DNA of 64,000 bases from NCBI RefSeq assembly GCF_030144855.1, contig NC_082710.1:171802001-171866000 (forward strand). Direction: 5' to 3'. The notes below the pieces were generated by a model. The model was given only the letters and a program-made list of their open reading frames with translations, was not told the DNA's origin and did no database searches. This document shows positions 3,561 through 60,493 of the stretch, piece by piece (the first letter of the stretch is position 1; each line of letters starts with the position of its first letter). A program made the translations under genes and the position numbers. Source of the stretch: Hypanus sabinus. Lineage: Eukaryota.

Positions 3561-4370
3561 GCAAGTATTCATGGGAACACAGTAAAAAAAAAATAACGAC
3601 ATGAACAGAGGAGCGCTTTTGGCGCAGAATTTAAAAGTTATAGTGGTACACAACATTTAATGCTTCAATACAGTCGTCAAATCTGGTCAATTAATACAAT
3701 AACACCAAAATGCATATCTGTTATGTCCGGTCTGGAGCCCGCATTCCGGGTCATGATCTGCTCCGCGGACTCCGGACTCCGGGTCTTGTAGTCGTCCCTC
3801 CTTTCACCCTTGAGCTAATTAGTCACACCTGTGGATTATTGTGGCTTGTTTGGACTCAAGGAGGCACACCTGATGCTCATTGGCTGGTAGGTGGAGATAA
3901 GGGGCTCTGGGGGCTTCCGATGATTAAAGGGGAACAGCCAACCAGAACCATGACAGCGGTCATGGCTGTGTGAAGGCTTGGGAGGGAGTGCTCAGTTGGT
4001 GCATGTGTGAAAGTGGTTTGGAACTTGTTGAGGGAAATAGAGTGGGGAAGGCGTGGGAATTGCTGGGAGGGGGTTGCCTGGGTCTGGTAATGGCAGTCAA
4101 GGCGAGAGGAGGGGCTGAGGGAAAGAGAGTGGAGAAGGAGCGGGATAGGGATTTGGGATCAGAGGTAGGCAGCTGAGGAGAAACGGATTATTGTGAAGGG
4201 AGAAATAAAGGGAATAAGGAGATAGTGAGGGGATGGATGAATGAAAACCGAGACAAGGGAATAAAAGAATAAGAAATGACAGTGGAGAGAGTTCTGAAAG
4301 TGAGGAAGATGAACAAGTTCAGAGAGGAGGTGTTGTCATAATTAGGTTTAATGAGAAGGCGCAAGGACAC

Positions 4371-10892: not shown

Positions 10893-10923
10893 GAGGATTG
10901 AGGGAAATATTCCACTTGTTTAG
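10893..10923 (+). CDS. NCR3-like: Gene A last coding exon: (R)RIEGNIPLV*
   Basis: Acceptor tgggtttttcag|; phase matches the phase-2 end of the TM exon; TAG at 10921-10923; identical coding sequence at 60463-60493. Confidence 0.75.
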
Positions 10924-11065
10924 ATATCGGTCATCGCAGAAATAGGAAGATGGAGTTCACTGTGCTTTACTTTGCTCCATCTGGAATTATAAAACCAGGG
11001 AAATTCAGCACTTCTTTTAGATCAACCAATTTGAATGAAAATGGCACAGATGCTGGAAATGAAAT

Positions 11066-28336: not shown

Positions 28337-28340
<4 letters not shown>

Positions 28341-28371: not shown

Positions 28372-28373
<2 letters not shown>

Positions 28374-28399
28374 GGGAGTACAAACCCAGAGCCGTCAAA

Positions 28400-39370: not shown

Positions 39371-39450
39371 ATTGTGCAATGATAGTGTTAAGCAAACGCA
39401 TTTGTATGAAAAGCTGAACAGTTTGTGAACAGCGAGAGACACTATAAATA
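39371..39450 (+). promoter_or_regulatory. Candidate proximal promoter of gene B: C/EBP-like ATTGTGCAAT (39371-39380) and TATA box TATAAATA (39443-39450)
   Basis: Consensus matches 160-240 nt upstream of the leader ATG; function not shown. Confidence 0.4.
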
Positions 39451-39608
39451 GTTCCCCAACATAGACAGTAAGCACAAACATAGACACTATGTTATGACAA
39501 CATTTCCAGAGAAATGATCTGAGCTGGCTTGTCCCAAAAACGGGATCAATGAATCTGTACTAGCAAGCTATTGTTTTTTTGTCTTCACTTACAGGCAATC
39601 TTCGAAAA

Positions 39609-39648
39609 ATGATGTGGAATATGGTCGTTTGGTCAGCAGTGTTCTTCG
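39609..39648 (+). CDS. NCR3-like: Gene B leader exon: MMWNMVVWSAVFF(G)
   Basis: Strong acceptor ttgtttttttgtcttcacttacag| at 39594 (exon from 39595); AAAATGA start; G|GTAAGC phase-1 donor joins every V exon in frame. Length and layout resemble NKp30 exon 1 (MAWMLLLILIMVHPG). Confidence 0.8.
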
Positions 39649-39681
39649 GTAAGCAAGGCAAACTTAGAGATTCATATACCG

Positions 39682-39907
39682 NNNNNNNNNNNNNNNNNNN
39701 NNNNNNNNNNNNNNNNNNNNNNNNNNNNNNNNNNNNNNNNNNNNNNNNNNNNNNNNNNNNNNNNNNNNNNNNNNNNNNNNNNNNNNNNNNNNNNNNNNNN
39801 NNNNNNNNNNNNNNNNNNNNNNNNNNNNNNNNNNNNNNNNNNNNNNNNNNNNNNNNNNNNNNNNNNNNNNNNNNNNNNNNNNNNNNNNNNNNNNNNNNNN
39901 NNNNNNN
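39682..39907. other. Assembly gap (226 N)
   Basis: Run of N; paralogous units read ...taccggaacatggggtg..., so the true gap may be only a few nt. Confidence 1.
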
Positions 39908-41300
39908 ATGGGGTGAAGGCCTTGAAAGTGAGTACATATGTAGTGGGAACATTTCAATGATGGGACAAGTGTAGTTGAATGGTTGATGAGCCAGATGGTT
40001 GAGGGGTAAGAACTGGTCATGAAACTGGTGAAGTGGGTATGGAGGAACATTTACCTTCTTCCCGCTGGCAGCGTGGTGGAGGGTGCTTTCCTGCGACAGC
40101 GAATCGTGTACATGTGCTCAATCGTCGGGAGTGTTTTACCCGTGATTCACTGGGCCATATTGACTACTATTTGTAGGAATTTCCATTCAAGCGCATTGGT
40201 AGTTCCATCCTAGGCTGTGATTCAGCCAGTCAACGTACTTTCCACCAGATAACTACACAGGTTTGTCAAAGGTTTAGGTGCTTTGCCGAATCTTGGCAGA
40301 CTTCTAAGGCAGTAGAGGAGCTATTATGATTTCTCAGTAATGGGACTTACGTACCGGACCTAGGACAGAACCCCTGAACTTATAACACCGAGAAATCTAA
40401 AGTTGCTAACCCTCACTGCCACTGATCCTCCAATGAGTACAGGGTCATGGGCTTCCGGTTTCCTCCTCCTGAAATCAATAATTAGCTCATTGTTCTTGCG
40501 GTCATTGAGTGCGAGATTGTTGTTAGCAAAGTTGAATATGATATTGGTGCTGTGCTTCGCCGTATAGTCATGAATCTAAAGTCATTAGTGTAGGAGCTAA
40601 GCACACAGACTTGTGGTACACCTGTGTCGATAGGGATTGTTGTTGCCAATCCGAAATGACTGGGTTCTGCAAGTGAGGAAATCGAGGACCCATCTGCACC
40701 AACGAGGTATAGAGGCCAATGTCGTGAAGATTTTACATTAGATTTGAAGGGAGGTTAGTATTGAATGGCAAGGTGCAGTCGAGAAAGAACATTCTTGCTG
40801 TATGCATTTTGCTGTCCATATGTTCCAGGGTTGAGCGATGAGAGAATGAAATGGCATCTGCTGTAGACCTGTTGTGCAGGTAGGCAGAATGCAGCAGTTC
40901 CTAGTCACTTTTGAAGCCGGAGCGAATATGTTTCCTCACCAGCATCTCATGTAGGTGCTACTAGACGACAGTTATGGAGGCAGGCTACAAAGCTCTCCTT
41001 AGTCATCAGTATAACTGTATGCTGCTCGAAGAAGATGAGCACCTCAGACTGCAGAAATGAGGGGTTGAGTAACTGAGTAAATATACCAGGCAGATGATCA
41101 GCACAGGTCCTCATTATTCAGCCAGGTATCCACCTACGCCCGATGCTTTCCGTGGGTTCACCGTCCTGCAGAATGCTTTGAGGTCGGCCCCAGAGACTGA
41201 AATCACAGGGTCATCGGGACTGCTGGAAACTCATGAGGGTTCATCCATGCTTTGACGGTGAAAGAGAGCAAACAAGGAATTGCGCCCATCTGGCATCGAA
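39908..41300 (-). mobile_element. Rex1/Babar LINE RT fragment; paralogous copies at about 43260-43990, 47975-49380 and 51005-52460
   Basis: Minus ORFs such as 51685-52332 (RCVLSNCADHLPGIF...CFEQHTVILMTKK) and 48692-48997 (AYLHKNSTADAISL). Confidence 0.8.
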
Positions 41301-42308
41301 GCCCTGTTATCACCTATGTCATCCTGTTATCACCTATGTCCAGTTCTCCGACTCGTAGCAGAAAGCCATTTGAGAGCCTCGCACGACCACTGCCAATGGC
41401 AAATTGCACTGCGGGAAGCAAACGAAGGTAGGACGTGCGCCATATTTGGTAGGAACATACGGAGTGCTGCCGAGCAGAGGGTCCTTATGGCATAAGTGGT
41501 TAGAATCCTGAATGTGACAGCGTCCGATTATAGGGTGGATTTTGGGATGCTTTCCCTCATTATTGTGTCGTTCGTTATAACAGTTGTGTTGTCAGGTTAC
41601 AGCTATTTAAAACATTGTCAGCGGTTTTAGTCCCCAATTATAGGAAGAATGCGATTGAGTTTGATAGGATCCAGACAAAGCTGATTCAATTAGGAGGGAC
41701 AGAATGGTATATGGCAACAATTTTTATTACATGGATCGTGTGTTTGAGTTAAGTCAAGTCATTTATCTATGTGCACGTAGACCGTCAAACGAGGCAACTT
41801 TTCTCCGAACCAGGGTTGAAAGCACAGCAGTATACATAACACACACGCAATTAATATCTTACGGAAGCACAGATGGCATCTACAGGTGGACATAAAAAAA
41901 ACAAACTAAACTGTAGAAGTTCATTATTGTAAGGCACAGAGCAGATAAACCAGTGACATTATGAATGCGACGCGGCCGAGAGTTCTGAAGCCTAATGGCC
42001 CGTGGGAAGAAAATGATCCCGATTCTGAACGGTCTTTTTTATGCTTTGGAGTCTCCTGCCTAATGGTAGAAAGTCAAAGAGGATGCTGGATGGATGGATG
42101 GAATACTTAATAATAAGGAGAGTTGTGTACGCAGGCTCCTAACAGTAAGTACTCTGCGTACGCAGCGCTCCTGATACAATTCCTCTTTGGATGGTAGGGA
42201 AACTATGATGATCCATTCAGCAGTTCCCACATCTCATTTACCCACGTTCGGTCCAAAGGCTTCTATGTTCCATGGCTTTTATTGCTTCTATATGCTTTTT
42301 CCATTAAC

Positions 42309-42599
42309 AGTAGGGGAGATTCAAACCAGAGGACATGAGCTGAGAGTTAAGAGGCAGAAATTTAGTGGTAACACGAGGGGGGACATCTTTACTCAGAGAG
42401 TAGCAGCTGTGTGGAACGAGCTTCCAGTAGAAGTGGTAGAGACAGGTTCGATTTTGTCATTTAAAAAAAATTAGATGGGTATATGGACAGGAAAGGAATG
42501 GAGGGTTATGGGCTGATGCAGGTAGGTGGGACTAGGTGAGAGTAAGCTTTCGGCACGGACTAGAAGGGCCGTGATGGCCTATTTCCGTGCTGTAATTGT
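42309..42599 (+). mobile_element. 5'-truncated CR1 3' end just upstream of V1
   Basis: QTRGHELRV...FTQRVAAVWNELP motif and tail ccgtgctgtaattgt. Confidence 0.85.
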
Positions 42600-42663
42600 G
42601 CAACAGGTGGCTTTGAGTGTTGGGCCAAAAACAATGAGATAATGAGATTATTTCTGGTTACAG

Positions 42664-43005
42664 GAACTATAACAACTAACGGAATTATCAGACAATCGCC
42701 AGAGCAAATCACGATTACTGAAGGGGGAACGGCGCAGCTGAACTGTACTTACGTCAGTAATGTGAACGATACAAAGAAGCTGGTCGGAGCCTTTACCTGG
42801 TACAAAGACGAGGAACACCGTGTTGTTTCCAACAGGTCCAGCGGGTTTCATTGTCGGGTGAGGACCAGCAGCTCAGCGCACATTCTATGCCAATCTATAC
42901 AAATTGTCAGCGTCAGTATGAACGATACAGGGAAGTATTACTGCAGAGCACACCTTCTCGGGAAGGGAGTTTATCTTGGAAAAGGGACACAAGTGACAGT
43001 CACAC
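42664..43005 (+). CDS. NCR3-like: V1: VJ-type Ig V exon, NKp30-like, intact, with two extra Cys
   Basis: tttctggttacag| acceptor, C|GTAAGT donor, 342 nt, phase 1-1. QSPEQITITEGGTAQLNC, WYKD, DTGKYYC, LLGKGVYLGKGTQVTV resemble NKp30 (EGSSAFLPC, WFRD, VLGLGVGTGNGTRLVV). Confidence 0.9.
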
Positions 43006-45467
43006 GTAAGTTCGTCTTATATTGCATTTATATTCGACGTTCGTTGCGCACCTCTCAACTTCTGCAATAAAGTGTACAGTACCTCAGTGCAAATTTACAC
43101 AAAGAAATTGGGAATATCATTGACTTACTGATGGTGAAGTACATGTTGACAAAATAATGAAAGGTAAATTAACATTGCAATCGACATAATCAAGTTAATT
43201 TTTATCTGGGAGTGTTAACGCAACTGTTTGCAGGAAAACTCCCAGAATCAATCACACACCACCAATCCGATTGTTGCCAATTCGAAAGGACTGGGTTCTG
43301 CAAGTGGGGAAATCGAAGTCCCAATTGCACCAAGGAGGCAATGAGGCCAATGTCTTGAAGATTATTTATTAGTTTCTAACCTCCCTTTGAAGGGAAATTA
43401 GTATTGAATGGCGTGATGCAGTCGAGAAAGACTATTCTTGCTGTATGCATTCTGATGTCCATATGTTCCAGGGTTGAGTGAAGAGACAATGAAATGGCAT
43501 CTATTGTTACCTGTTGTGCAGGTAGGCAAAATGGAACAGTTCCTTATCGCTCCTGGGGTTGGAGTTGATATGTTTCCTCACCAGCCTCTCATGTAGGTGC
43601 TATTGGAGGACAGTTATGGAGGCAGGCTACAAAGCTCTTCTTAGTCATCAGTATAACTGTATGGTGCTCGAAGCAGATGAGTACCTCAGACTGCAGAAGT
43701 GAGTGGCTGAAGATCTGAGTAAATATTCTAGCCAGTTGATCAGCACAGGTCTTCATTGCTCAGCCAGGAATCCACTTACGCCCGATGCTTTCCCGTGGGT
43801 TCACCGTCCTGAAGAATGCTTTGAGGTCGGCCACAGAAACTGAAATCACAGGATCAACGGGAGCGCTGGAAATTCATGAGGGTTCATCCATGCTTTGACG
43901 GTGAAAGTGAGCATAGAAGGCATTGCGCCCATCTGGCAGCGAAGCCCTGTTGTCACTTGTGTCACCTGGTTTCACTTTGTAGGAGAATTTGGGATTCAAG
44001 TCCAAGCTGTCGAAGAAACTTCAACGAGTCAAGTGCAGTCAGGAATGTCCACTTCGACCGTAAGATGCCTTTCCAAGATCGTACCCGGATCTCTCGAGTC
44101 TTACTTGGCCGCCGGGCCTGAATGCCACTGATCTGGCTGTCAGCAGATTGTGGATTTTATGTTTCACGCAGGAATTCTGGTTAGGGAAGACACTGAAGGA
44201 CTTTGAGGGGACATCTCTTCTACAAACATATTACGTTAATTCAGATCACAGATGACTCATTAAACGATATCCAGTCCTCCGACTTGGAGCAGATAACCAT
44301 TTCTTTGCCTCCGACCTCCACTGGCAATGGCAAATTGCACTGCGGGAAGCAAACAAATGCAGGACGTACGCCATATTTGGTAGGAATCTACGGAGTGTTG
44401 CAGGGCTGAGGGACCTTATGACATAAGTGGTAGGATCCTGAAAATGGCCGCGTCAGACTAGAGGGTGGATTTTGGGATGCTTGCCCTCATTATCGTGTCG
44501 TTCGTTGTAACAGTTGTGTTGTCAGGTTACAGTTATTTAAAACATTGTTAGCGGTTTTAGTCCCCAATTAAAGGAAGAATGTCATTGAGTTGATAAAATG
44601 CAGACAAAGCTGATTCAGTTAGGAGGGAAAGACTGGTATCTGGCACCAATCTTTATTACATGGATGGTGTGTTTGAGTTAAGTCAATCATTTACCTATGT
44701 GCACGCAGACCGTCAAAGGAGACAACATTTCTCTGAACCAGGGTTGAAAGCACAGCAGTATACATAACACATACACGTAATATCTTATGAAAGTACAGAT
44801 AGCATCTACAGGTGGATTACACTTAAATAAACAAGCTAAAGTACAGAAATTGATTATTGTAAGACACAGAGCAGATAAACTAGTGACATTTTGAATACGA
44901 TTTGGCAGAGGCTTCAGAAGCTTAATGGCCCGAGGGAAGAAAATGTTTCCGATCCTGACGGCCTTTTTCTTATGCATTGGAGTCTCCTGCCTAATTGTAG
45001 AAAGTCATAGAGGATGCTGGATGTCCTAACTCTAAGGAGTCTGCGTACGCAGTGCTCTTGATACATTTTCTCGTTGGATGGTCGGAAGACTCCGATGATC
45101 CTCTCAGCAGTTCCCACAGTCCATTATGGAGATTTCCGGTCCGATGCTGGGCCGCTCCCATTCGAGATGGAGATACAACTAGTCAGTAAGGGAAACGATG
45201 ATATACCTTTATGGTAAGATTTAGGAACTTTTCAGTATCGAAAGGGGTCTTTTTCAGACATAGGACGGTTAGAAACTGGGGAGTACTGCCTGAAGAGGTG
45301 GTGGGGACAGGTACTTTAACAAGCATCCAATACTTTAATCGCCACATCATAGAAGTCTTTGGAACAAATGTAGGTAAATGAGTTCGGGGTAGCTAATTGC
45401 AACTGGTGCCTTTGACATGTTGGGCTGAAAGGAAGATATGAGATAATGAGATTATTTCTGGTTACAG

Positions 45468-45809
45468 GAACTACAAGGTCTAACGGAATAATCAAACCAT
45501 TGCCAGAGCAAATCACGATTACCGAAGGGGGCACAGCGCAGCTGAAGTGTACTTACATCAGTAAAATAAGCGATACAAAGAAGCCGGTCGGAACCTTTAC
45601 CTGGTACAAAGACGAGGAACACCGTATTGTTTCCAACAAGTCCAGCGGGTTTCATGGTCAGGTGAGGACCAGCAGTTCAACGCGCATTCTAAGCCAATCT
45701 ATACAAATTGTCAACGTCAGTATGAACGATACAGGGAAGTATTACTGCAGAGCACACCTTCTCGGGAAGGGAGTTTATCTTGGAAAAGGGACACAAGTGA
45801 CAGTCACAC
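45468..45809 (+). CDS. NCR3-like: V2: VJ-type Ig V exon, intact canonical C-W-C
   Basis: Same splice sites, 342 nt, open frame. Confidence 0.9.
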
Positions 45810-46726
45810 GTAAGTTCGTCTTATATTGCATTTATATCGACGTTCGTTGCGCATTTATCAACTTCTGCAATGAAGTGTATAGTACCTCAGTGCAAATTTA
45901 AACAAAGAAATTGGGAATATCATTGACGTACTGATGGTGAAGTACATGTTGACAAAATAATGAAAGGAAAATTAACATTGCTATCGACATAATCAAGTTA
46001 ATATTTATCGGGGAATTTTAATGCAATCTGTTTGCAGGAAAACTCCCAGAACCAGTCACACAACACCGGAAAGATATCAAATAATGCAATAAAGAATATA
46101 GGTGAATCAAATTAAGAAAATAGGTGGATTACACAATGTGGATTACAGGTGGATTACACATAAATAAACAAACTAAAGTGCAGAAGTTAATTATTGTAAG
46201 GCACAGAGCAGATAAACCAGTGACATTTTGAACGCGATGTGGCAGAGAGTTCAGAAGCCTTATGGCCCGTTGGAAGAAAATGTTTCCGATCCTTACCGGT
46301 CTTTTTTTATGCATCGGAGTCTCCTGCCTGATGGTAGAAAGTCATAGAGGGTGCTGGATGAATGGATTGAATACGTAATAATGAGATCTGTGTACGCAGG
46401 CTCCGAACACTAAGGACTCTGCGTACGCAGCGCTCCTGTTACATTTCCTCTTTGGATGATAGGGAGACCCCGATGATCCTCTCAGCCGTTCCCACAGTCG
46501 TTTATGGAGATTTCTGGTCCGATGCTCGGCCGATCCCATACGAGATAGAGATGCAACTAGTCAGTAAGGGAAACGATGTTGTACGTTTATGGCATGATTT
46601 AGGAAGTGTTCAGTATCTAAAGTGATGTTTTTCTGACAGAGAACGGTTAGAAACTGGAGAGTACTGCCTGAAGAGGTGGTGGAGATAGGTACTTTAAGAA
46701 GCATCCAATACTTTAATCGCCACAGC

Positions 46727-47044
46727 ATAACCATATAACCATATAACAATTACAGCACGGAAACAGGCCATCTCGGCCCTTCTAGTCCGTGCTGAACGCT
46801 TACGCTCACCTAGTCCCACCTACCTGCACTCAGCGCATAACCCTCCATTCCCATTCCTTTCCTCTCCATATACCTATCCAATTTGTTTTTAAATGACAAA
46901 ATTGAACCTGCCTCTACCCCTTCTACTGGAAGCTCGTTCCACACAGCTGCCACTCTCTGAGTAAAGAAGTTCCCCCTCGTGTTACCCCTAAACTTTTCTC
47001 CCTTAACTCTCAACTCATGTCCTCTTGTTTGAACGTCCCCTACT
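46727..47044 (-). mobile_element. 5'-truncated CR1 3' end upstream of V3, antisense, with (ATAACCAT)n-like tail
   Basis: Reverse complement closely matches 42309-42599. Confidence 0.85.
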
Positions 47045-47204
47045 CTCAATGGTAAAAGCTTATAGAAGCCATAGAAGCTATAGAACCTAGAAGCTTTTGG
47101 ACCAAATGTGGGTAAATGAGAGCAGCGTAGCTATGTGCGACTGTTGGCTTTGAATGTTGGGCCGAAAGGAAAATATGAGATAATGAAATTATTTCTGGTT
47201 ACAG

Positions 47205-47528
47205 GAAACATAACAACTAACGGAATTATCAAACAATCGCCAGAGCAAATCACGATTACTGAAGGGGGCACGGTGCAGCTGAAGTGTACTTACATCAGTA
47301 AAATAAACGATACAAAGAAGCCGGTCGGAGCCTTTACCTGGTACAAAGACGAGGACAGGTCCAGCAGGTTTCATGGTCGGGTGAGGACCAGCAGTTCAAC
47401 GCGCATTCTAAGCCAATCTATGCAAAGTGTCAACGTCAGTATGAACGATACAGGGAAGTATTACTGCACAGCACACCTTCTCGGGAAGGGAGTGTATCTT
47501 GGAAAAGGGACACAAGTGATAGTCACAC
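47205..47528 (+). CDS. NCR3-like: V3: VJ-type Ig V exon with an in-frame 18-nt deletion after WYKDE
   Basis: Intact AG/GT, 324 nt, both canonical Cys; WYKDEDRSS vs WYKDEEHRVVSNRSS. Confidence 0.88.
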
Positions 47529-50216
47529 GTAAGTTCGTCTTATATTGCATTTACATTCGACGTTCGTTGCGCATTTCTCAACTTCTGCAATAAAGTGTAC
47601 AGTACCTCAGTGCAAATTTAAACAAAGAAATTGGGAATATCATTGACGTACTGATGGTGAAGTACATGTTGACAAAATAATGAAAGGTAAATTAACATTG
47701 CAATCGACATAATCAAGTTAATTTTTATCTGGGAGTGTTAACGCAATCTGTTTGCAGGAAAACTCCCAGAATCAGTCACACAACACCAGAAAGATATCAA
47801 GTAAGCAGACAGGTGAAAATCTGGGATTGCTCAGCGTTATCTCGGAAACGGGTAGAAGTCAGTCATAAGTGAGCTTACATTATCTTACCTTCACATTCAA
47901 TGTTTTACCACCCTCATCAACATCTGCAAAGGAAAAAAAATGAAATCGTATTTAAGCGTCAGATCTTTAACGGGAATATGGGGTGAAGGCTTTGAACGTG
48001 AGTACATGTGTAGTGGGAACATTTCAATGATGGGACAAGTGTAGTTGAATGGTTGGAGAGCCAGATGGTTGAGGGGTAAGAACTGGTCATGAAACTGGTG
48101 ATGTGGGTACTGAGGCACATTTACCTTCTTCTCTCTGGCAGTGCGGTGGAGGATGTTGATGACGATGGATGCTGCTTTCCTGCGACAGCGAATCGTGTAC
48201 ATGTGCTCAATAGTCGGGAGTGTTTTACCCGTGATTCACTGGGCATATTGACTACTATTTGTAGGAATTTCCATTCAAGCGCATTGGTAGTTCCATCCCA
48301 GGCTGTGATTCAGCCAGTCAACGTACTTTCCACCACATAACTTCACAAGTTTGTCAAAGGTTTAGATGCTTTGTCGAATCTTGGCAAACTACTAAGGCAG
48401 TAGAGGTTCTACCATGCTTTCTTTGTAATGGGACTTTGTAATGGATCCATTGGGCCTAGGATAGAACCCCTGAACTAATAACATCAAGAAATTTAAAGCT
48501 GCCAACCCAAACTACTACCGATCCTCTGATGAGGACAGGGTCATGGACTTCCCGTTTTCTCCTCCTGAAATCAATAATGAGCTAATCGTTCTTTTGGTCA
48601 TTGAGTGCGAGGTTGTGCTAGCAAAGTTGAGTATGACATTGGTGCTGTGCTCTGCCTTATAGTCATCAATCTAAAGACATTAGTGTAGTAGCTAAGCACA
48701 CAGACTTTTGGTACACCTGTGTGGATAGAGATTGTGGAAATGCTGTTGCCAATCCGAAATGACTGGGTTCTGCAAGTGGGGAAATCGAGGACCCGATTGC
48801 ACCAACGAGGTATTGAGGCGAATGTCTTGAAGAATTTTCATTAGTGTTGAAGGGAGGTTAGTATTGAATGGCGAGTTGCAGTCGAGAATGAGCATTGTTG
48901 CTGTATGCATTCTGATTTCCATATGTTCCTGGGTTGAGCGAAGAGACAATGAAATGGCATCTGCTGTGGAATTCTTGTGCAGGTAGGCAGAATGCAACGG
49001 TTCCTAGTCGCTCCTGAGGTCGCAGTTGATAGATTTCCTCACCAGCCTCTCATGTAGGTGCTACTAGACGACTGTTATGGAGGCAGGCTACAAAGCTCTT
49101 CTTAGTCATCAGTATAACTGTATGCTGCTCGAAGCAGATGAGTAATTCAGACTGCAGAAGTGAGGGATTGAAGATCTGAGTAAATATTCCAGCCAGTTGA
49201 TCAGCACAGGTCTTCATTACTCAGCCAGGTATCCACCTACGCACGATGCTTTCCCGTGTGTTCACAGTCCTGAAGAATGCTTTCAGGTCGGTCCCAGAGA
49301 CTGAAATCACAGGGTCATCGGTAGTGCTGGAAACTCATGAGGGTTCATCCATGCTTTGACGGTGAAAGTGAGCATAGAAGGTGTGCGAGTTAAGTCAAGT
49401 CATCTACCTATGTGCACGTATTACCGTCCAACAAGACAACATTTCTCCGAACCAGGGTTGAAAGCATTGCAGTATGCATAACACACATACACATAATATC
49501 TTATGGAAGCACAGACGGCATCTACAGGTGGATTAGACATGAATAAAAAAAAACTAAAGTACAGAAATCGATTATTGTAAGGCACAGATCAGATGAACTC
49601 GTGACAGTTTGAATGTAATTTGGCAGACAGTCCAGAAAACTAATGGCCCGAGGGAAGAAAATGTTTCCGATCCTTACCGGTCTTTTTTTTTATGCATCGG
49701 AGTCTCCTGCCTAATGGTAGAAAGTGAAAGAGGATGCTGGATGAATGGATGGAATACTTAATAATAAGGAGCGCTGTGTACGCAGGCTCCTAACACTAAG
49801 GACGCTGAGTACTCAGCGCTCCTGATACATTTCCTCTCTGGATGGTAGGGAGACCCTAATGATCCTCTCAGCCGTTCCCATAGTCCATTATGGAGATTTC
49901 CGGTCCGATACTCCGCCGATCCCATGCGAGATGGAGATGCAACTAGTCAGAAAGGGAAACGATTATGTACCGTTATGGAAAGATTTAGGAAGTTTTCAGT
50001 ATCGAAAGACATGTTTTTCAGCAGAGGACGGCAAGAAACTGGAGAGTTGTTGGAGACAGGTACTTTAAGAAGCATCCAATACTTTAATCACCACAGCATA
50101 GAAGCCTTTGGACCAAATGTGTGTAAATGAGATCAGCGTAGCTAATTGCAACTGGTGGCTTAGACATGTTGGGCTGAAAGGAAGATATGAGACAATGAGA
50201 TTATTTCTGGTTACAC

Positions 50217-50558
50217 GAACTACAAGGACTAACGGAATATTCAAACAATCGCCAGAGCAAATCACGATTACTGAAGGGGGCACGGTGCAGCTGAAGTGTA
50301 CTTACATCAGTAAAGTGAACGATACAAAGAAGCCGGTCGGAGCCTTTACCTGGTACAAAGACGAGGAACACCGTGTTGTTTCCAACAGGTCCAGCGGGTT
50401 TCATTGTCGGGTGAGGACCAGCAGTTCAACGCACATTCTAAGCCAATCTATGCAAATTGTCAACGTCAGTATGAACGATACAGGGAAGTATTACTACAGA
50501 GCACAGCTTCTCGGGAAGGGAGTTTATCTTGGAAAAGGGACACAAGTGATAGTCACAC
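50217..50558 (+). pseudogene. NCR3-like: V4: pseudo-exon (acceptor AG>AC; F-strand Cys>Tyr)
   Basis: ttacac|gaac at 50215-50216 instead of ttacag|gaac; YYY (tac 50495-50497) instead of YYC; frame still open and donor intact. Confidence 0.85.
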
Positions 50559-53500
50559 GTAAGTTCGTCTTATATTGCATTTATATCGTCGTTCGTTGCG
50601 CATTTCTCAACTTCTGCAATAAAGTGTACAGTACCTCAGTGCAAATTTAGACAAAGAAATTTGGAATATTGTTGACATTCTGATGGTGAAGAACATGTTG
50701 ACAAAATAATGAAAGGTAAATTAACATTGCAATCGACATAATCAAGATAATCTTTATCAGGGAGTACTAATCTAGTCTGATTGCAGGTAAACTCCCAAAA
50801 TCATTCTTACCCCACCAGAAAGATATCAAATAAACAGACGGGTGAAAGTGCTGGGATTGCTCAGCATTATATCGGAAACGGGTAGAAGTCAGTCCTAAGT
50901 GAGCTTACATTATCTTACCTTCACATTCAATGTTTTACCACCCTCATCAACATCTGCAAAGGAAAAAAAAAGAATTCGCATTTAAGCGTCAGATCTTTAC
51001 CGGAACATGGGGTGAAGGCTTTGAACGTGAGTACATGTGTAGTGGGAACAATTCAATGATGGGACAAGTGTAGTTGAATGGTTGAAGAGCCAGATGGTTG
51101 AGGGGTAAGAACTGGTCATGAAACTGGTGAAGTGTGTACTGAGGCTCATTTACCTTCTTCCCGCTGGCAGCGCGGTGGAGGATGTTGATGACGATGGATG
51201 CTGCTTTCCTGCCACAACGAATCGTGTACATGTGCTCAATAGACGGGAGTGTCTTACCCGTTATTCACTGGGTCGTATTGGCTACTTATTTGTAGGAATT
51301 TTCATTCGAGGGCATTGGTAGTTCCGTCCTAGGCTGTGATTCAGCCAGTCTACGTACTTTCCACCACATAACTTCACAAGTTTGTCAAATGTTTAGATGC
51401 TTTGTCGAAACTTGGCAAACTACTAAGGCAGTAGAGGAGCTACCATGCTTTCTCTGTAATGGGCCTTACTTACTGGGCCTAGGACAGAACCCCTGAACTT
51501 ATAGCACAGAGAAATTTAAAGGTTCTAACCCTCACTGCCACTGATCCTATGATGAGGACAGGATCATGGACTGCCGGTTTCCTCCTCCTGTAATCAATAA
51601 TCAGCTCATCGTTCTCGCGGTCATTGTGCGAGGTTGTTGCTAGTAAAGTTGAGTATGACATTGGTGCTGTGCTCTGCCTTATAGTCATGAATCTAAAGTC
51701 ATTAGTGCAGGAGCTAAGCCCACAGACTTGTGGTGCACCTGTGTCGATAGAGATTGTGGAAATGCTGTTACCAATCCGAAATGACTGGGTTCTGCAAGTG
51801 AGAAAATCGGGGACCCAATTGCACCAACGAGGTATAGAGGCCAATGTCGTGAAGAATATTCAGCAGTTTTGAAGGGAGATTTGTATTGAATGGGGAGGTG
51901 CAGTCGAGAAAGAACATTCTTGCTGTATGCATTTTGCTGTCCATATGTTCCAGGGTTGAGCGATGAGAGAATGAAAAGACGCCTGCTGTGCAACTGTTGT
52001 GCAGGTAGGCAAAACAAGGCATTTCCTAGTCGCTTCTGAGGTCCGAAATGCTGTGTTTCCTCACTATCCTCCCATGTAAATGCAACCTGATGACAGTTGT
52101 GGAGGCAGGCTACAATGCTCTTCTTAGTCATCAGTATAACTGTATGCTGCTCGAAGCAGATGAATAAATCAGACTGCAGAATTGAGGAGTAGAGGATCTG
52201 AGGAAATATTCCAGGCAGATGATCAGCACAGTTGCTCAGTACACATCTAGGTATCCACCTACGCGCGATGCTTTCCCGTGTGTTCCCCGTCCGGAAGAAT
52301 GCTTTGAGGTCGGCCCCAGAGACTGAATTCACAGGGACACCGAGAGTGCTGGAAACTCATGAGGGTACATTCAGGCTTTGACGTTGAAAGGGAGCATAGA
52401 AGGAATTGTGCCCATCTGGCAGCGAAGCAGTGTTGTCACCTATGTCACCTGGCTTCACTTTGTAGAAGAAGACGTGATTTAAGTCCCAGCTGTCGAGGAA
52501 ACCTCAACAAGTCAAATGCAGTTAGGAATGTGTGCTTCGCACGTACGATGTCTTTCCAAGTTCGTACCTAGACCTCTTGTGTCTTACTTGGCCGCCGGGC
52601 CTGTATGCCACTGATCTGGCTCTCGGCAGATTGTGGATTTTATGTTTCACGCAAGGCTTCTGGTTAGGGAAGACACTGAAGGACTTTGAGGGGACATCTC
52701 TTCTACAAGCTAGCTATAGTCATTCAGATCTCAGATGACTCATTCAAAACGGTCCAGTCCTCCGACTCGTAGGAGATAACCATTTAATTTCCTCCCACTA
52801 CCACTGGCAATGGCAAATTGCACAGCGGGAAGCAAGCACAAGAAGGACGTGCTCCATATTTGGTAGGAACATACGGAGTGTTGCAGAGCTGAGGGTCCTT
52901 AGGACATAAGTGGTTAGAATCCTGAAAATGGCCGCGTCAGATTATAGGGTGGATTTTAGGGATGCTTGCCCTCATTATTGTGTCGTTCGTTATAACAGTT
53001 GTGTTGTCAGGTTACAGCTGCTTAAAACATTGTCAGCGGTTTTAGTCCCCACATTATAGGAAGCATACGATTGAGTTGGATGAGATCCAGACAAAGCTGA
53101 TTAAATTAGGAGGGAAAGAATTGGTGCGTCTGTGTTAAGTCAAGTCAGTTACTATGTGCACGTATACCGTCAAACGAGACAACTTTTCACCGAACCAGGG
53201 TTGAAAGCACTGCAGATAGTATCTTATGAAGCACAGACGGCATCTACAGGTGGAATACACATAAATAAACAAACTAAAGTGCAGAAATTAAATACTGTAA
53301 AGTGCAGAGCAGATTAACCAGTGACATTTTGAATCCCATGCAGCAGAGAGTTCAGAAGCCTAATGGCCCGAGGGCAGAAAATGTATCCGATCCTGATCTG
53401 TCTTTTTTTATGCATCGGAGTCTCCTGCCTAATGGTAGAAAGTCATAGAGGATGCTGGATGAATGGATGGAATACTTAATAATAAGGAGCTCTGTGTACG

Positions 53501-53960
53501 CAGGCTCCTAACACTAAGGACTCTGCGTATGCAGCGCTCCTGATACTTTGAATGGTAGGGAGACCCCTATGATCCGCTCAGCCGTTCCCACAGTCCTTTA
53601 TGGAGATTTCCGGTCCGATGCTCGGCCGATCCTATACGAAGTTGAGATGCAACTGCTCAGTAAGAGAAACGATGATATACCTTTATGGTAAGATTTAGGA
53701 ACTTTTCAGATCTAAAGGGATCTTTTTCAGTATCGAAAGAGTTGTTTTTCAGCAGAGGACGGTTAGAAACTGGGGAGTACTGCCTGAAGAGGTGGTGGGG
53801 ACAGGTACTTTAAGAAGCATCCAATACTTTAAATCCCACAGCACAGAAGCCTTTGGACTAAATATGGGTAAATGAGATCAGCGTAGCTATGAGCAACTGG
53901 TGGCTTTAACATGTTGAGCCGAAAGAAAATATGAAACAATGGTATTATTTCTGGTTACAG

Positions 53961-54302
53961 GAACTACAACAACTATCGGAATAATCAAACAATCGCCAGA
54001 GCAAATCACGTTTGCTGAAGGAGGCACAGCGCAGCTGAATTGTACTTACATCAGTAAAATAAACGATATAAAGAAGCCGGTCGGAGCCATTATCTGGTAC
54101 AAAGACGAGGAAAACCGTACAGTTTGCAACAGCTGCACCGGGTTTCACGGTCGCGTAAGGACTAACAGTCTACAGGGAGTTCTAAGCCAATCTGTACAAA
54201 TCATCAACGTCAGAATGAACGATACAGGGAAGTATTACTTTCGAGCACACCTTCTCGGGAAGGGAGTTCAGCTTGGAAAAGGGGCACAAGTTACAGTGAC
54301 AC
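53961..54302 (+). CDS. NCR3-like: V5: most divergent V exon; F-strand Cys>Phe and a new CNSC motif
   Basis: Intact AG/GT, 342 nt, open frame; YYF (ttt 54239-54241); TGC at 54125 and 54134. Confidence 0.8.
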
Positions 54303-54739
54303 GTAAGTTCGTCTTATATTGCTTTTATATTCGACGTTCGATGCACATTTCGCAACATCTGCAATAAAGTGTATCTCAATGCAAATTTAGACAAAGAAAT
54401 TCGGAATGTTATTGACATACTGACGGTGAATTAAATGTTGACAAAATAATGAAACGTAAATTAACATTGCAATCGACATAATCAAGTTAATTTTTATCTG
54501 GGAGTGTTAATGCAATCTGTTGGCAGGAAAACACCCAAAATCAGTCACACACCCGCCGAAAAAAATCAAATAAGCAGACGGGTGAAAATGCTGGGATTGC
54601 TCAGCATCATCTCGGAAACAGCAGTCGTCAGTCATAAGTAGGCTTACGTTGTCTTACCTTCACGTGCAGTGTTTTACCACCCTCATCAACATCCGCAAAG
54701 GAAAAAAAATGAATTCGTATTTAAGCGTCAGAGCTTTGG

Positions 54740-57700
54740 AATATATGACTATAGGACCACCAAATGTAGGAACAGAATTAGGCCATCTGGCTGATTCAGT
54801 ATTCCTCTCAGCCCCAATCTCTCGCCTTTTTCCTTATTCCTCCATGCCCTGATCAATCGAGAACCTAGGAATTTCCGCCTTAAATATAAATAAAGGCTTG
54901 GCCTACACATAATTCCACAGATGCTCTACTCTGTGGCTAAAGAACTTCCTCTTCATCAGTGTTTTAAAAAGACGACCCTCGATTCTGGGAGCGAATCCTC
55001 TGCGCACTCCCACCAGAGCACATATCTTCTTCACATTCTCTCTATCGAGGCTTTTCATCATTTGATAGGTTTCAATTAGGTCACCCCTCATTCTTCTGAG
55101 TTCTAGTAAATACAGGCTCAAAGCCAACAAACGGTCTTCATACATCAAGCCATTCAATCCTGCATTCATTTCCATCTTCCTCCTTTGAACCATAGCACAT
55201 TACAGCATAGAAACAGGCCCTTTGGCCCTTCTTGGCTGTGCCGAACCATTTTGCTGCCTAGTCCCACTGACCTGCACCTGGCTCATATCCCTCCATACAG
55301 CTCTCACCCATGTACCTGTCCAAGTTTTTCTTAAATGTTAAAAGTGAGCCCGAATTTACCACTTCATCTGCCAGCTCATTCCACACTCCCGCCACCCTCG
55401 GTGTGAAGAAGTACCCCCCCATGTTCCCTTTAAACATTACCTCCGTCACCCTTAACCCATGTCCTCTGTTTTTTTTTCTCCCCTAGCTTCAGTGGAAAAA
55501 TCCTGCTTGCATTTATTCTGTATATACCCATCATAATTTTTAATACCTCTATCAAATCTTCTCTCATTCTTCTCGGCTCCAGGGAATAAAGTCCTAACCT
55601 ATTCAACTTTTCTCTGTAACTCAGCTTCTCAAGTCCCGGAAACATCCGTGTAAACCTTCTCTACATTCTTTCAACTTTATTAATATCCTTTCTGTAATTT
55701 GGTGAGCAAAGCTGAACAGAATACCCCAGATTCGGCCTCACCAATGTCTTATACAACCTCACCATTACATTCCAACTCTGATACTCAATACTTTGATTTA
55801 TAAAGGCCAATGTACCAAAAGATCTCTTTAGGAGCCTATCTACACGTGACGCCACATTTAGGGAATTTTGCATCTGTATTCCCAAATCCCTCTGTTCTAC
55901 TGCACTCTCCAGTACCCTATCATTTACCTTGTTTGTTTCACCTTGGTTTGTCCTTCCAAAGTGCAATGCCTCACACTTGTCTGTATTAAAATCCATCTGC
56001 CATTTTTCAGCCCATTTTTCCAGCTGGTCCAAATCCCTCTGCAAGGTTTGAAAACCTTGCTCACTGTCCACTACACCTCCAATCTTTGTATCATCAGCAA
56101 ATTTGCTGATCCAGTTTATCACATTATCATCCAGATCATTGATATAGATGACAAATAACAATAGACACAGCACTGATCCCTGTGGAAGACCGCTAGTCAC
56201 AGTCTCCACTCAGAATAGCAATCCTCCACTACCACACTCTGGCTTCTCCCGTTCAGCCAATGTCTAATCCAATTTACTACCTCACCATGTATATCTAGCG
56301 ACTGCATCTTCGTAAGTAACCTCCCATGTGGGACCTTGTTATAGGCCTTGTTATAGGTCCGTGTAGACAACATCCACTGCCTTCCCCACCTTGGATTCCA
56401 TCTACCACTCCTTTGCTCATTCTTCTAATCTCTCTGCTCTTTTGCTGCCTCTCTAAATCATCCATCCTACTTGCCCCTCCATTTGTCTCATACCTCCGCA
56501 AACTTTGCAATCCCTTCATCAAAATCATTGACCTATAATGTTACAAGAGTCGGTCCATCCCAGACCCCTGTGGAACACCACTGGTTACCGGCAGCCAACC
56601 AGAAAAGGCCCCTTATTCCAGTTCATTGCCTCCAACCAATCAACCACTGCTCTATCTATGCTAGAGTACTTCCCTTTTCTTCCTTGGGCTCGAAACTTCT
56701 AAAGAATCCTCATTTGTGGCACCTTGTAAAAGGCCTTCTGAGAATCCAACTGTACAACATTAACCTTTGTCTATCCTGCTCGTTATGTCTTCAAATAATT
56801 CAAAACGGATTTGTCAGGCAAGCTTTTCTTATCGCGTGCCTCCAAGTATCCTGCTCATCCTTATATTCGACACCAACATCTTCCTAATCACTGAGGTCAG
56901 ACTAACTGGCTTTAATTTGCTTTCTCCTGTCTCACAGTGGAGTGATATTTGCAATTTCTATTCCTTTGGAATCATGCCAGAATCTAATGATCTATTAATG
57001 ATCATTACTAATGCCTCCACAATCTCGTCGGCCACCCCTTTCAGAACACTGGTGTGTACAGGTAACTTCTGGTCCAGGTTACCTTTCTCCCTACGGCCCT
57101 ATCAATTTCTCAAGAACCTTTTCTCTAGTATTAATAACTTCATACACATCATGACCGCTGACACTTGGGACGTCCACGATACTGCTGGTGTCTTCCACAG
57201 TGCAGACTGATGCAAAATACTTATTCATTTCGACCTCTATTTTCTTGTCGTCCATTACCACCTCTCCGCATTGTGTTCCAGTGGTCCGAAATCCATTCGG
57301 AACTCTCCTTTACACTTTATGCATCTGAAGAAATTTTTAGCATCCTCTTTAATTTTATGGGCTAGCTTACTTTCGTATTCCATGTTTACCTTCTCAGTGA
57401 CTATATTCGTTGCCTTCAGATGTCTTTTAAAATCTTTCCAATCCTCTAACTTTCCACTGATTTTTGTACCTCCTTTGGATTATATGCTGGTTTTGACTTC
57501 TCTTGTTGTGTTATCTCGCCTTTAGAATACGTTTTCCTCTTTGAGATGTATATATCCTGTGCCTTTTGAATTGCTTCCAGACATTCCAGGGATCGCTGCT
57601 TTGCCGTCATGCCTGCCTACTTTCTTTCCTAATCAATTCTGACTAACATCTCTCTTATGCCCCCTCTTCTACTGTAATACCGATACATCTGACATCATCT

Positions 57701-58860
57701 TCACCGTCTCAAATTTCAGGATTAATTGCATCATATTATGATCACTTTCCCCTAAGGGTTCTTTTACATTAAGCTCCCTAATCAATTCTGGCTCATTGCC
57801 CATCACCCAATCCAGAAAATCTCTTCCCCTACTGCGTTCAACCACGAGCTGCTCTAAAAAGCCATCTCGTAGGCATTCTGGACACTCCTCCTCTTGGATA
57901 ACAGCACCAACCTGATTTTCCCAATCTACCTGCATATTGAAGTTCCCTATCACTGTGTAAAACTGCGCTTTTAGTATGTATTTTCTATCTTCCGTTGTAA
58001 TTTGTAGACCACATCCTTACTATTGTTTGGAAGTCGGTATACAACTCCCATCAGGGACCTCTTACCCTTGCATTTTCTTAGCTGTAAAAACAATGATGCA
58101 ATATCTTCCGACTTCATGTCATTTTTCTTTTCTTTTCCAATCTTTTTACTAATATCAACATCTTGAGATAAGAAAAAATGATACATAATTATTGGGATTA
58201 CAAAATTAAAATGAACATAAAAGAGTACATAAATAAAAAGTACAATAAAGTTAAGTCAACCAAAATCATACATGATACAAATGTAATATGAACAAGACAA
58301 AAAATACAAACTAGGTATATCAATATGAAAAGATTTTATGCCCTCCCTAATACACCAAATCCTGACCCAGCTATTAAAATGTATAAGCTTCCTACTTCTG
58401 GCCTCATTAGCAGGTGGCACAGGTAGTAATCCTACGATCGCAATCCTAAGGTGCTGCCCAATTTATCACACTACTCCCTGAACTCCCTATGCAGACCCTC
58501 GTCACTCGTCCTACCATATCATTGATACCTTCATGGACCAACACCTCTGGCTGTTCACCCTTCCAGATAAGAATATCGAGGACTCGATCCGATATGTCCC
58601 TGGCACCCGAAAGGCAGCATGCCTTCCGGCAATCCCGTTTTCGTCAACAGAACTATCTATCCGTTACTCTAGTAACGAACCCTTATCTCCCGTCTTCCCT
58701 TCTGAATCACTGAACCGGACTCAGATCCCGCCTCTGTGACTTTCGTCTGTTAGGCCAACACCTGCCCCACCCCGCCCACCAAAATATCCGAAGTAATATG
58801 CCTATTGTTGCGGGGGATTGCCACAGGGGTATGCAATACCTCGTTAACCTCCATTCCACG
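54740..58860 (-). mobile_element. Stacked antisense CR1 LINE fragments in the V5-TM intron
   Basis: Minus ORFs with SGLPQGSVL..FVIYINDLD..ISKFADDTK (55661-56209), endonuclease GNFN..DW and LDWVMGNE..PLGESDHN (57669-57953); CR1 tails at about 54745 and 55195. Confidence 0.88.
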
Positions 58861-59315
58861 TCTTTAATGTTGGAGAATCGTATGAAATCGTATCAAATTG
58901 CGAAAATAACTCATGCCGCTTTGCATGGGGTTAGCAGATTGTAAAGGAAAACAAGGTAAAATCATACTTTTACACAGAGAACCGAGAAATTTGATGCAAG
59001 TCTAAGCCTTTTAAAAGAGCAATCCATGCCAATTTCTCTTTGTAACCTACTTTCTTTACATTTCCATCAACTCTACTACAGAGAAGGAGTGATTCATAGA
59101 TCTCATTTGTCAAGGTCAGGGTGGAAAATGAAGCACCCGGAGCAAACCCAGGCGCTTCATTATTAGCAATGATTAGCAATGGTCATAGTTAGCAATGATC
59201 GTACATGTCTATTTAAACTGAAAGAAGCACCTTTTCCCTGCTCAAAACCGAGCTGAAGTCGATAGGAATTGGTTGTGATTTGTTGGAGAATGTGATTTAC
59301 TTTTATTCTCAACAG

Positions 59316-59472
59316 CTAGGAACCCAACGGGATTTGGAAGGAGCTTGCGTTGGCAGATGACTGAAATGGGAGTAAAACTTGCAGTGTTTGTTTTCATCAA
59401 CAGTGTAACAGTTTTCGGCATCCGCACCTGGGAGACATATAGACCTCTCATTGCAACAAATCGAGCTAACAG
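59316..59472 (+). CDS. NCR3-like: Gene B TM exon: (P)RNPTGFGRSLRWQMTEMGVKLAVFVFINSVTVFGIRTWETYRPLIATNRAN(R)
   Basis: ttattctcaacag| acceptor, AG|GCAAGT donor, 157 nt; in frame with the phase-1 end of all V exons. Confidence 0.85.
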
Positions 59473-60462
59473 GCAAGTATTCATGGGAACACATTTAAAA
59501 AATTAACGACATGAACAGAGGAACGCTTTTGGCGCAGAATTTAGAAATTATAGCGGTACACAACATTTAATGGTTCAATACGGAAGTCAATTCTGGTCAA
59601 TTAATACAATAAAACCAAAAGGCATAACAGTAGAATTAGATCAATCGGCCCATGGAGTCTGCTCCGCCATTCGAACATGGCTGATTTATTATCCCTCTCA
59701 ACACCATACTCCTGTTTTCTCCCCTTATACTTTGACACTCTTGCTAAACAAATTCCTGTAAACCTCTGTTTTAAATAAACTCAATGAATGGGCCGCCTCA
59801 AGCGTCTGTGCCAATAAACTCCAGTGATTCTCCGGTTCTGGCTAAAGATGGTAAGATCTACTCTGCTCTGTATTTTCGTGTGTCACAGACAATTTTGGCA
59901 AAACATATCTAGGAGTGCTTTGCAGTTAATGTGTTTGTGTCTTGGTAATAATTATTTAAGACACTTTATTGAAATTTGAACAGATAATAAATTTGAAAAT
60001 GCTGCTTTGCCTGTCTTATCCATTATGGCTATTGGTAGTTGTTCAGCCAAGGTACTGAAATCAAACTCATCCTTTTCTTGTGGAAGCAATGTTTCCATGA
60101 ACGGTGACGAACCAAATCCATGACAGATAATCGGAAAACAAACAGAAAAAGCTTTGATTAGCTTTCCCCCTAAAACTCTAATTCCATCTACACAGTTCGC
60201 ATGAATTAGCATGCAACAATACAATTTAAATGGTCATTTAAAATATAAACGTTTTGAGGATGCCTGCTAAGTTAACAAAATTCGATTTAAAGAGTAATAT
60301 TCTCCTATATTCCAATCTAATGTAATATCTGAACACATTAGCGTTACTTTAACAAACAAATGATGTCTATGAAAATGGTAACTGGACAACTATGATGGAA
60401 TAAGTACGAAGAGCCTTATGACCTATTGTTACATTAAGATCTTATGCGCTTGGGTTTTTCAG

Positions 60463-60493
60463 GAGGATTGAGGGAAATATTCCACTTGTTTAG
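60463..60493 (+). CDS. NCR3-like: Gene B last coding exon: (R)RIEGNIPLV*
   Basis: tgggtttttcag| acceptor; identical to 10893-10923. Confidence 0.75.

Follow-up and report, generated by a model that had tools for sequence, protein, structure and literature searches.

It was found that a gene of the Atlantic stingray Hypanus sabinus has one leader exon, five tandem V exons, one transmembrane (TM) exon and one tail exon, and that this array is real and conserved in a second stingray species, Hemitrygon akajei. Judged from its sequence and a modelled fold, the gene genuinely belongs to the NKp30 (NCR3) family of receptors and is of the activating type. I consider serial splicing of the V exons into a multi-V receptor to be the most likely use of the array, with a probability of roughly 55%.

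Layout and family of the array gene

The window (the whole 64-kb stretch of DNA analysed here) holds the NKp30-like gene family and retroelement ORFs, and no other host genes were found in it. It lies on Hypanus sabinus chromosome CM057978.1 and is identical to assembly GCA_030144855.1 (100% over 19,492 bases). All exons and spacers given below lie on the + strand. The coding part of the leader exon (39609..39648, 40 nt) encodes MMWNMVVWSAVFF plus one base and ends at a phase-1 donor GTAAGC. It is the sole leader copy within the window and matches the leader MMWNMVVWSAVFLG of P0158, the RefSeq model of the H. akajei orthologue. Since an AG acceptor lies 14 nt upstream of the leader ATG, there may be a 5′ UTR exon further upstream. 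An assembly gap (an N run without strand, 39682..39907) begins 33 nt past the leader donor; it is thus intronic and does not affect the reading frame, and its letters were left unfilled. The rest of the intron 1 spacer (39908..42663) recurs ahead of each V exon in a self-BLAST comparison and is homologous to intron 1 of an upstream single-V paralogue, gene A. Thus, the repeat unit comprises the V exon together with the greater part of intron 1 ahead of it and some 250 bp of intron 2.

The five V exons are all of phase 1/1 with a GTAAGT donor, are 83-95% identical to one another and are separated by introns of 1.4-3.4 kb. Each ends in LGKGTQVTVT within the same exon (a G-x-G-T-x-V-x-V motif with no RSS), which agrees with the initial annotation of VJ-fused domains. 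The stalk/TM exon (59316..59472, 157 nt, beginning PRNPTGFGRSLRWQMTEMGVKLAVFVFINSVTVFGI) encodes the membrane span MGVKLAVFVFINSVTVFGI, which contains a Lys, and about 25 residues without an ITIM or ITAM follow the span. A basic TM residue and a short tail without motifs are the marks of the activating type represented by NKp30/NCR3. The donor of the TM exon is of the GC type in phase 2 (CAG|GCAAGT); the RefSeq models P0158 and P0001 use the identical GC donor, and reading through it leads to a stop after 12 codons. The tail exon (60463..60493, 31 nt) encodes (R)IEGNIPLV followed by a stop. It is conserved, as 95 of 98 nt of the tail region agree among the array gene (gene B), its H. akajei orthologue and gene A, compared with about 84% in the flanks. 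The RefSeq models of the relatives have 3′ exons other than 60463-60493. All of these exons lie where they were initially placed. The spliced coding lengths were recomputed as 570 nt (189 aa) for a single-V product and 1578 nt (525 aa) for a four-V product, exactly as first given.

It had been claimed that the array contains no copy of the leader or the TM exon. Searches with blastn-short and tblastn found none inside the array, and this part of the claim stands, while the window as a whole does contain further TM and tail copies. The second TM exon (3400..3564; match over 3379-3581, 95%) and the second tail exon (10897..10927; match over 10875-10950, 98.7%) are not parts of the array gene; they belong to gene A (LOC132394821, P0001). 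An undetected leader for each V exon had been named as a possible refutation of the arrangement, and the array has no such leader copy. The V exons start at a phase-1 acceptor, and the peptide MRLFLVTG, read from an in-frame ATG further upstream, is not a signal peptide.

The NKp30-like identity proposed at first was confirmed by sequence, profile and fold, with NCR3 as the best single-domain match in PDB. V1 matches the Pfam V-set (E 1.6e-9). NCR3 provides the top four PDB matches in phmmer (E 6e-9) and the best single-domain match in a profile search against PDB (E 1e-12), and NKp30 provides the top four PDB matches of Foldseek with an AF2 model of V1. The nearest single-V relatives carry the RefSeq name NCR3-like.

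Conservation of the array and lesions in its exons

The orthologous locus of H. akajei (L001) is gap-free and collinear with the Hypanus array locus at 94-95%. It has four intact V exons, Ha, Hb, Hc and Hd, which correspond one to one to V1, V2, V3 and V5, so the comparison of orthologous loci that had been suggested yields four collinear V exons. The two loci share the leader, the TM exon and the GC donor, but the H. akajei locus has four V exons instead of five, and all four have Cys104. V1 (42664..43005, 342 nt) is intact with AG/GT sites and has Cys23, Cys104 and two extra Cys residues. V2 (45468..45809, 342 nt) is also an intact VJ exon; its dS from Hb is 0.027, and the V2-Hb pair is supported at 98-100% in trees of the flanks. 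V3 (47205..47528, 324 nt) has an 18-nt in-frame deletion (6 aa) in the C′-C″ region and is otherwise intact. V4 (50217..50558) is a dead pseudo-exon, in which the acceptor AG has become AC and Cys104 has become Tyr; the nearest downstream AG would break the reading frame. V4 has no H. akajei counterpart, and the segment 49465-51895 around it has no orthologous match. V5 (53961..54302) has intact splice sites but Phe in place of Cys104 (TGCA>TTTC), while its counterpart Hd retains this Cys. V5 is of an older type, having the CNxC motif found in the single V of Mobula. The initial description of five usable V exons has to be corrected accordingly, as V4 has lost its acceptor and both V4 and V5 lack the second canonical Cys; neither these points nor the GC donor of the TM exon had been mentioned at first. 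Over the two species, 8 of 9 V exons retain AG/GT sites and open frames, and 7 of those 8 have both canonical Cys residues, V5 being the exception.

The Mobula birostris locus (L002) and gene A (L003) have one V exon each. The single V is the ancestral state, surviving in Mobula and in the neighbouring paralogue. The proteins of Mobula birostris (P0159), Pristis pectinata (P0165) and Hypanus gene A (P0001) are of the same family as the array gene, with a V domain of 69-81% identity, an equivalent leader, a Lys in the TM span and matching exon phases, but each has a single V exon. At least four V copies, in turn, predate the divergence of Hypanus and Hemitrygon.

The gap in intron 1 was compared with the gap-free relatives. 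Its flanks are collinear with L001, where 134 bp lie between them, and with the paralogous locus L003 of the same genome, where 59 bp lie between them. A V exon hidden in the gap was therefore rejected, as the flanks stand in order in both relatives and leave no space for it.

Are the V exons under selection? Between the species, the V exons have diverged by 3.9% and the introns by 3.7%. The pooled dN/dS between orthologues is 0.90 (40 non-synonymous and 13 synonymous changes), and dN/dS is about 0.9-1 both among paralogues and between orthologues, with few synonymous changes. These values fit neutral drift as well as diversifying selection. On the other hand, stops and frameshifts in the V exons are fewer than the neutral expectation. 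No stop codon has arisen in about 79-86 substitutions, as estimated from ML branch lengths (P ~0.02-0.06), and one in-frame indel was found compared with about 7 expected (P ~0.01). The reading frames have been kept, although the evidence for selection is weak. The lesions suggest relaxed constraint, since V4 is dead, V5 lacks the disulfide Cys, V3 has lost 6 aa and the acceptor of Ha is damaged.

Possible uses of the V exons

The array arose by tandem amplification, within the gene, of a segment of about 3 kb that carried the single VJ exon with almost the whole of intron 1 before it and some 250 bp of intron 2 behind it. The leader exon and the TM exon were not included in this unit and remained single. 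Beyond the anatomy, the family, the conservation and the lesions described above, I infer the following splicing outcome and signalling mode. Since all competent V exons have identical acceptors, strong GTAAGT donors, ordinary introns and phases of 1/1, ordinary exon definition would splice them in series. V4 would be skipped because its acceptor is lost. The predicted Hypanus product is leader-V1-V2-V3-V5-TM-tail, a receptor of 525 aa with four V domains and a short tail, whose Lys in the membrane span may serve an ITAM adaptor. A degree of exon skipping is probable. The number and the sequence of the V copies seem loosely constrained, with exons being born, converted and lost within the gene.

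The initial annotation had proposed either one V per mRNA, as a germline repertoire in the style of Dscam or protocadherins, or a chain of V domains, and of the two only the chain is supported from outside, by P0158 and by a horn-shark relative. P0158 (425 aa) joins the leader, Hb, Hc, Hd and the TM exon in series, using three of the four V exons and a different 3′ exon, which corresponds to a position just past the end of the window. Ha, which the model skips, carries a 381-bp insertion within the polypyrimidine tract of its acceptor. P0158 is not independent proof of chaining, as gene predictors join in-frame exons by default. In the three-V relative of the horn shark, all three annotated isoforms retain the three-V chain and differ only in the tail. 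Homologue searches, one of them with a query that ran across two V-V junctions, yielded genome-derived RefSeq/UniRef proteins only; neither Logan nor transcriptome proteins were among them. The array gene itself had no Hypanus protein model among the homologue matches, though neighbouring Hypanus genes appeared.

The lack of a Hypanus model would also fit a gene in which a single V is functional and the others are silent or decaying intronic duplicates, a reading that I regard as unlikely but as the strongest competitor of serial splicing. The functional V could be V1, the nearest to the leader, or V5, which is of the ancestral type and adjoins the TM exon. In that case, the gene would in effect be of the ordinary single-V NKp30-like kind, with pseudo-exons added, or it would be dying. 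The equal divergence of exons and introns, the dN/dS of about 0.9-1 and the lesions accumulated in V3, V4, V5 and Ha are as expected of such a gene, and patchy gene conversion could hold the frames open without selection. However, the 8 of 9 V exons with AG/GT sites and open frames, and the deficit of stops and frameshifts below the neutral expectation, argue against it. Moreover, four V positions that predate the split of the two genera still persist, and the spliceosome would hardly ignore intact exons with strong consensus donors.

Somewhat less likely still is alternative use, in which regulated or stochastic skipping leaves one V or a variable subset in each mRNA. The products would be a small germline set of 183-189 aa, NKp30-sized and differing mainly in the CDR1 and A-strand regions. 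Each single-V product is indeed in frame and of NKp30 size. At positions -3 and -1 of the predicted signal cleavage site, all V exons have retained small residues (TNG|I or TIG|I). The copies vary most in the N-terminus, the A strand and the CDR1-like loop, and diversifying selection could give a dN/dS close to 1. However, no known mechanism of mutually exclusive splicing is visible. A comparison of the V flanks with the unique last intron for docking/selector pairing (complementary 10-12-nt k-mers in at least 3 V flanks; exact Watson-Crick pairs only, leaving aside the assembly gap and the 31 unique nt of intron 1) gave nothing above shuffled controls. The splice sites are identical and of the U2 type. 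As the introns are 1.4-3.4 kb long and an mRNA with more than one V exon remains in frame, neither steric hindrance nor NMD could enforce exclusivity. The protocadherin model is ruled out because the V exons are internal and lack individual promoters and leaders. The CDR3-like loop and the J motif (RAHLLGKGVYLGKG) are invariant in all copies and in Mobula; with copies that are 83-95% identical, the repertoire would be very small. The sole public model, P0158, also chains V exons. A true cassette, in which one V is chosen by regulation per transcript or per cell and NK-like cells thereby obtain a germline repertoire of the NKp30 type, is highly improbable. Such a repertoire would be made by splicing and not by RAG, and it would be continually renewed as the exons undergo gene conversion with one another.

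An assembly artefact (haplotypes that were collapsed or expanded, or a false join across the gap) was named at the outset as a possible refutation. In its favour, the leader is separated from the array by a gap whose length is an estimate. The artefact is nevertheless effectively refuted, because the units differ by 6-16%, well beyond allelic difference, the separate gap-free assembly of H. akajei shows a collinear array, and the sequences on either side of the gap have the expected order in two gap-free relatives.

Comparison with known systems

Few VJ-type receptors do not rearrange; NKp30 is among them, and a relationship to the precursor of the antigen receptors is often discussed. It is generally treated as a one-domain receptor. 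NKp30/NCR3 is mentioned only as a non-rearranging, MHC-linked VJ gene in PMC10751288, PMC12227049 and PMC11599192. A literature search on NKp30-like genes in cartilaginous fish and on XMIV found nothing relevant. The array gene resembles human/mammalian NKp30 (PDB 3NOI, 3PV6, 6YJP) in fold (TM 0.67-0.70, at 30% identity), in the VJ-fused domain with a G-x-G bulge, in the basic TM residue and in the short tail without signalling motifs. In contrast, NCR3 has one Ig exon, while there are five V exons in Hypanus and four in the H. akajei orthologue, and the TM charge is Arg in NCR3 and Lys in the stingray gene.

In stingrays, the VJ exon of an NKp30-type gene can thus be amplified within the gene and kept across genera, and the turnover of exons within one gene seems to resemble that of the genes of a multigene family. 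If the V exons are chained, they would represent an undescribed class of multi-V NK-type receptors, masked by names such as 'polymeric immunoglobulin receptor-like'. P0158 bears this very name, which is misleading; it is an automated model and not a described receptor. If the V exons are used alternatively, the oldest jawed vertebrates would have a repertoire of receptors that is based on splicing.

Dscam exon clusters and the clustered protocadherins likewise have tandem paralogous exons for Ig domains (Dscam) or ectodomains (protocadherins) beside constant exons. The array gene differs from them, as no docking/selector pairing was found, its copies are few and the main binding loop is nearly identical among them. 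The variable exons of the clustered protocadherins and UGT1 each have their own promoter, start codon and signal peptide, which the V exons do not. The Dscam/protocadherin part of the initial proposal found no support.

It had also been stated that neither arrangement was known for this family. This did not survive the comparison, as automated NCR3 or NCR3-like models with two or three V domains exist in frogs and in other elasmobranchs. Xenopus tropicalis A0A803JGU9, Leptodactylus KAM3931049 and Heterodontus XP_067865770-5 have two or three VJ-type domains before one TM. However, they are just 30-36% identical to the array gene, and some of them have long signalling tails. These frog and shark multi-V models are independent expansions.

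Structure and family of the five-V gene

The first 19,492 nt of the window match the locus of an upstream paralogue, gene A (L003, positions 27195-46686), at 100%, which places the stretch on chromosome CM057978.1 of Hypanus sabinus (Atlantic stingray; GCA_030144855.1). The gene studied here, gene B, has one leader, whose coding part (39609-39648; 13 codons and one base) ends at a GTAAGC donor. Five mutually paralogous V exons follow, all of phase 1/1 with a GTAAGT donor: V1 (42664-43005), V2 (45468-45809), V3 (47205-47528), V4 (50217-50558), and V5 (53961-54302). The stalk and transmembrane (TM) exon (59316-59472) encodes a Lys in the membrane span (MGVKLAVFVFINSVTVFGI) and has a GC-type donor (CAG/GCAAGT), and the tail exon (60463-60493) is 31 nt long. 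Re-splicing reproduced exactly both products of the initial annotation: 570 nt and 189 aa with one V exon, and 1578 nt and 525 aa with V1-V2-V3-V5. Its description of the gene parts and of the array stands, once corrected for lesions in V3, V4, and V5 and for extra TM and tail copies. V4 is a dead exon: its acceptor is AC instead of AG, use of the next downstream AG would break the frame, and Cys104 is replaced by Tyr. In V5, Cys104 is changed to Phe via TGCA>TTTC, and V3 has an in-frame deletion of 18 nt in the C'-C'' region.

The gene belongs with NKp30/NCR3. Each V exon scored with the Pfam V-set model, and a single exon encodes the fused V and J-like parts (LGKGTQVTVT). The four best matches in a PDB sequence search were NCR3/NKp30 (E 6e-9), and NCR3 was the best single-domain match in a family-profile search (E 1e-12). 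With a predicted AlphaFold structure of V1 (pLDDT 77) as the query, the four best Foldseek matches were again NKp30 (TM 0.67-0.70). RefSeq gives the closest single-V proteins the name 'natural cytotoxicity triggering receptor 3-like'.

The orthologous array and use of the V exons

An N-free orthologous locus from Hemitrygon akajei (L001) aligns collinearly with the window at 94-95%, over a stretch that starts before the leader and ends past the tail. Its V exons number four (Ha, Hb, Hc, and Hd), and each has AG/GT sites and both cysteines; Hd, the counterpart of V5, retains Cys104. The Hb-V2 and Hd-V5 pairs have 98-100% support in trees of both flanks, and the Hc-V3 pair has 100% support in the upstream flank tree. 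Ha corresponds to V1 by position in the collinear alignment, and nothing in H. akajei matches the V4 unit (49465-51895). A 381-bp insertion (L001 12985-13365) interrupts the polypyrimidine tract of the Ha acceptor; no second copy of it was found in any of the loci compared. The insertion coincides with the sole V exon skipped by the RefSeq model.

How are the V exons used? The initial annotation had proposed either a chain or a Dscam/protocadherin-style choice of one V per mRNA; this interpretation is borne out in part, the chain faring better. The favored reading, with a probability of roughly 0.55, is that V exons are spliced in series to give a multi-V activating receptor. In the RefSeq model of the H. 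akajei gene, P0158 (425 aa, 'polymeric immunoglobulin receptor-like'), the leader is followed by Hb, Hc, Hd, the TM exon, and a 3' exon, with Ha left out; the GC donor after the TM exon is used in this model and in the gene A model P0001. Three isoforms are annotated for a three-V horn-shark relative; the chain is kept in all of them, and the tails alone differ. Frog 'NCR3' models have two or three V domains. This outside evidence is annotation only. Since in-frame exons are chained by default in gene prediction, such models are support rather than proof.

That only one V is in use, the others being silent, is unlikely but deserves some weight. Homologue searches returned no Hypanus protein model of gene B, although models of the neighboring genes are present. 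The same searches yielded no transcript-derived proteins. Alternative or variable V use is rather more doubtful. Several features speak against a regulated choice of one V. Every V combination is in frame, and the splice sites are identical across the V exons. These are internal, without their own promoter or leader, and the introns are 1.4-3.4 kb in size. When the sequences flanking the V exons were compared with the unique last intron, complementary k-mers of 10-12 nt were no commoner than in shuffles. Variation among the copies falls at the N-terminus, on the A strand, and in the CDR1-like loop; all of them, and Mobula, share one CDR3-like loop and J motif (RAHLLGKGVYLGKG). An in-frame ATG lies seven codons before the acceptors (42642, 45446, 53939), opening MRLFLVTG or MVLFLVTG at V1, V2, V4, and V5 and MKLFLVTG at V3. 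These peptides lack signal-peptide character, and the ATG is probably a by-product of duplication.

The array is not an assembly artefact, a reading of negligible probability, for the V units differ from each other by 6-16% and the collinear, gap-free H. akajei locus carries four V exons. An N run (39682-39907) starts 33 nt past the leader donor, within intron 1, so it does not bear on the reading frame. Continuity across it was assessed by aligning its flanks to gap-free relatives, with no letters filled in. The flanks lie in the same order and orientation in H. akajei, 134 bp apart, and in order in the upstream paralogue of the same genome, 59 bp apart. Thus, the leader-array join is correct and leaves no room for a hidden V exon.

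Origin and divergence of the V units

The repeat unit found by self-comparison is roughly 3 kb long: besides the V exon it includes almost the whole of intron 1 and some 250 bp of intron 2, with neither the leader nor the TM exon within it. The array spacer is also intron 1 of gene A. Since both gene A and the NCR3-like gene of Mobula birostris (P0159, L002) have a single V exon, one V is the ancestral state. V5 is of the old type, with a CNxC motif as in Mobula and the single-V relative Pristis, while V1-V4 group with the V of gene A. In trees of the exons and near-downstream sequences, units 1 and 3 group by species (Ha+Hc; V1+V3+V4), unlike the flanking introns, whose positional orthology is clear. 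This discordance suggests patchy gene conversion among the V units. Two LINE 3' ends, 88% identical and in opposite orientation (42187-42599, plus strand; 46746-47121, minus strand), directly precede V1 and V3, with the ORF motif ...GHELRVKG.KF.GNTRG.FFTQRVAAVWNELP, and more diverged copies are found at 55195-55500. These copies may be markers of rearrangements of the units, or may have brought them about.

Among paralogues, dN/dS is 0.8-2.1 within V1-V4 and 0.6-0.7 against V5; the pooled orthologue value is 0.90 (40 non-synonymous and 13 synonymous changes). Between the species, exons (3.9%) and introns (3.7%) diverge at an equal pace. Such ratios and rates would fit either drift or diversifying selection. 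The reading frames are nevertheless kept: no stop arose in about 79-86 substitutions (P 0.02-0.06), and there is one indel, in frame, against about seven expected from the intron rate (P ~0.01).

The tail exon, gene A, and neighboring retroelements

The annotated tail exon, a candidate 3' end of the gene, is a conserved island, in which 95 of 98 nt agree among gene B, its orthologue, and its paralogue, against about 84% around it. Other 3' exons are nevertheless used in the RefSeq models of the relatives. The second TM exon (3400-3564) and second tail copy (~10897-10927) belong to gene A (LOC132394821, P0001). The 3' end of gene A occupies 1-11464 (with L003), and the only V exon of this gene is upstream of the window start. 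The gene A TM exon is separated from the conserved tail island by the insertion of an LTR retroelement, about 6.4 kb long, with a gag zinc knuckle (4371-4964) and a reverse transcriptase (RT; 7317-8318). The last exon of P0001 (9322-9489) lies inside this insertion, and the tail is skipped.

The remainder of the window is retroelement debris. Downstream of the gene B tail, an insertion on the minus strand (61224-62988) has ORFs at 61321-62427 and 62418-62903 and a reverse transcriptase (RVT_1, E 3e-21). As the H. akajei locus lacks it, a LINE probably inserted here recently in Hypanus. In the intergenic region, 17253-21253 holds what is left of an LTR-retroelement pol gene: RT and RNase H at 17253-17882 and an integrase zinc-binding domain at 20750-21253. 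Two segments (21780-22664 and 26341-27189) form an inverted pair with 75% identity.
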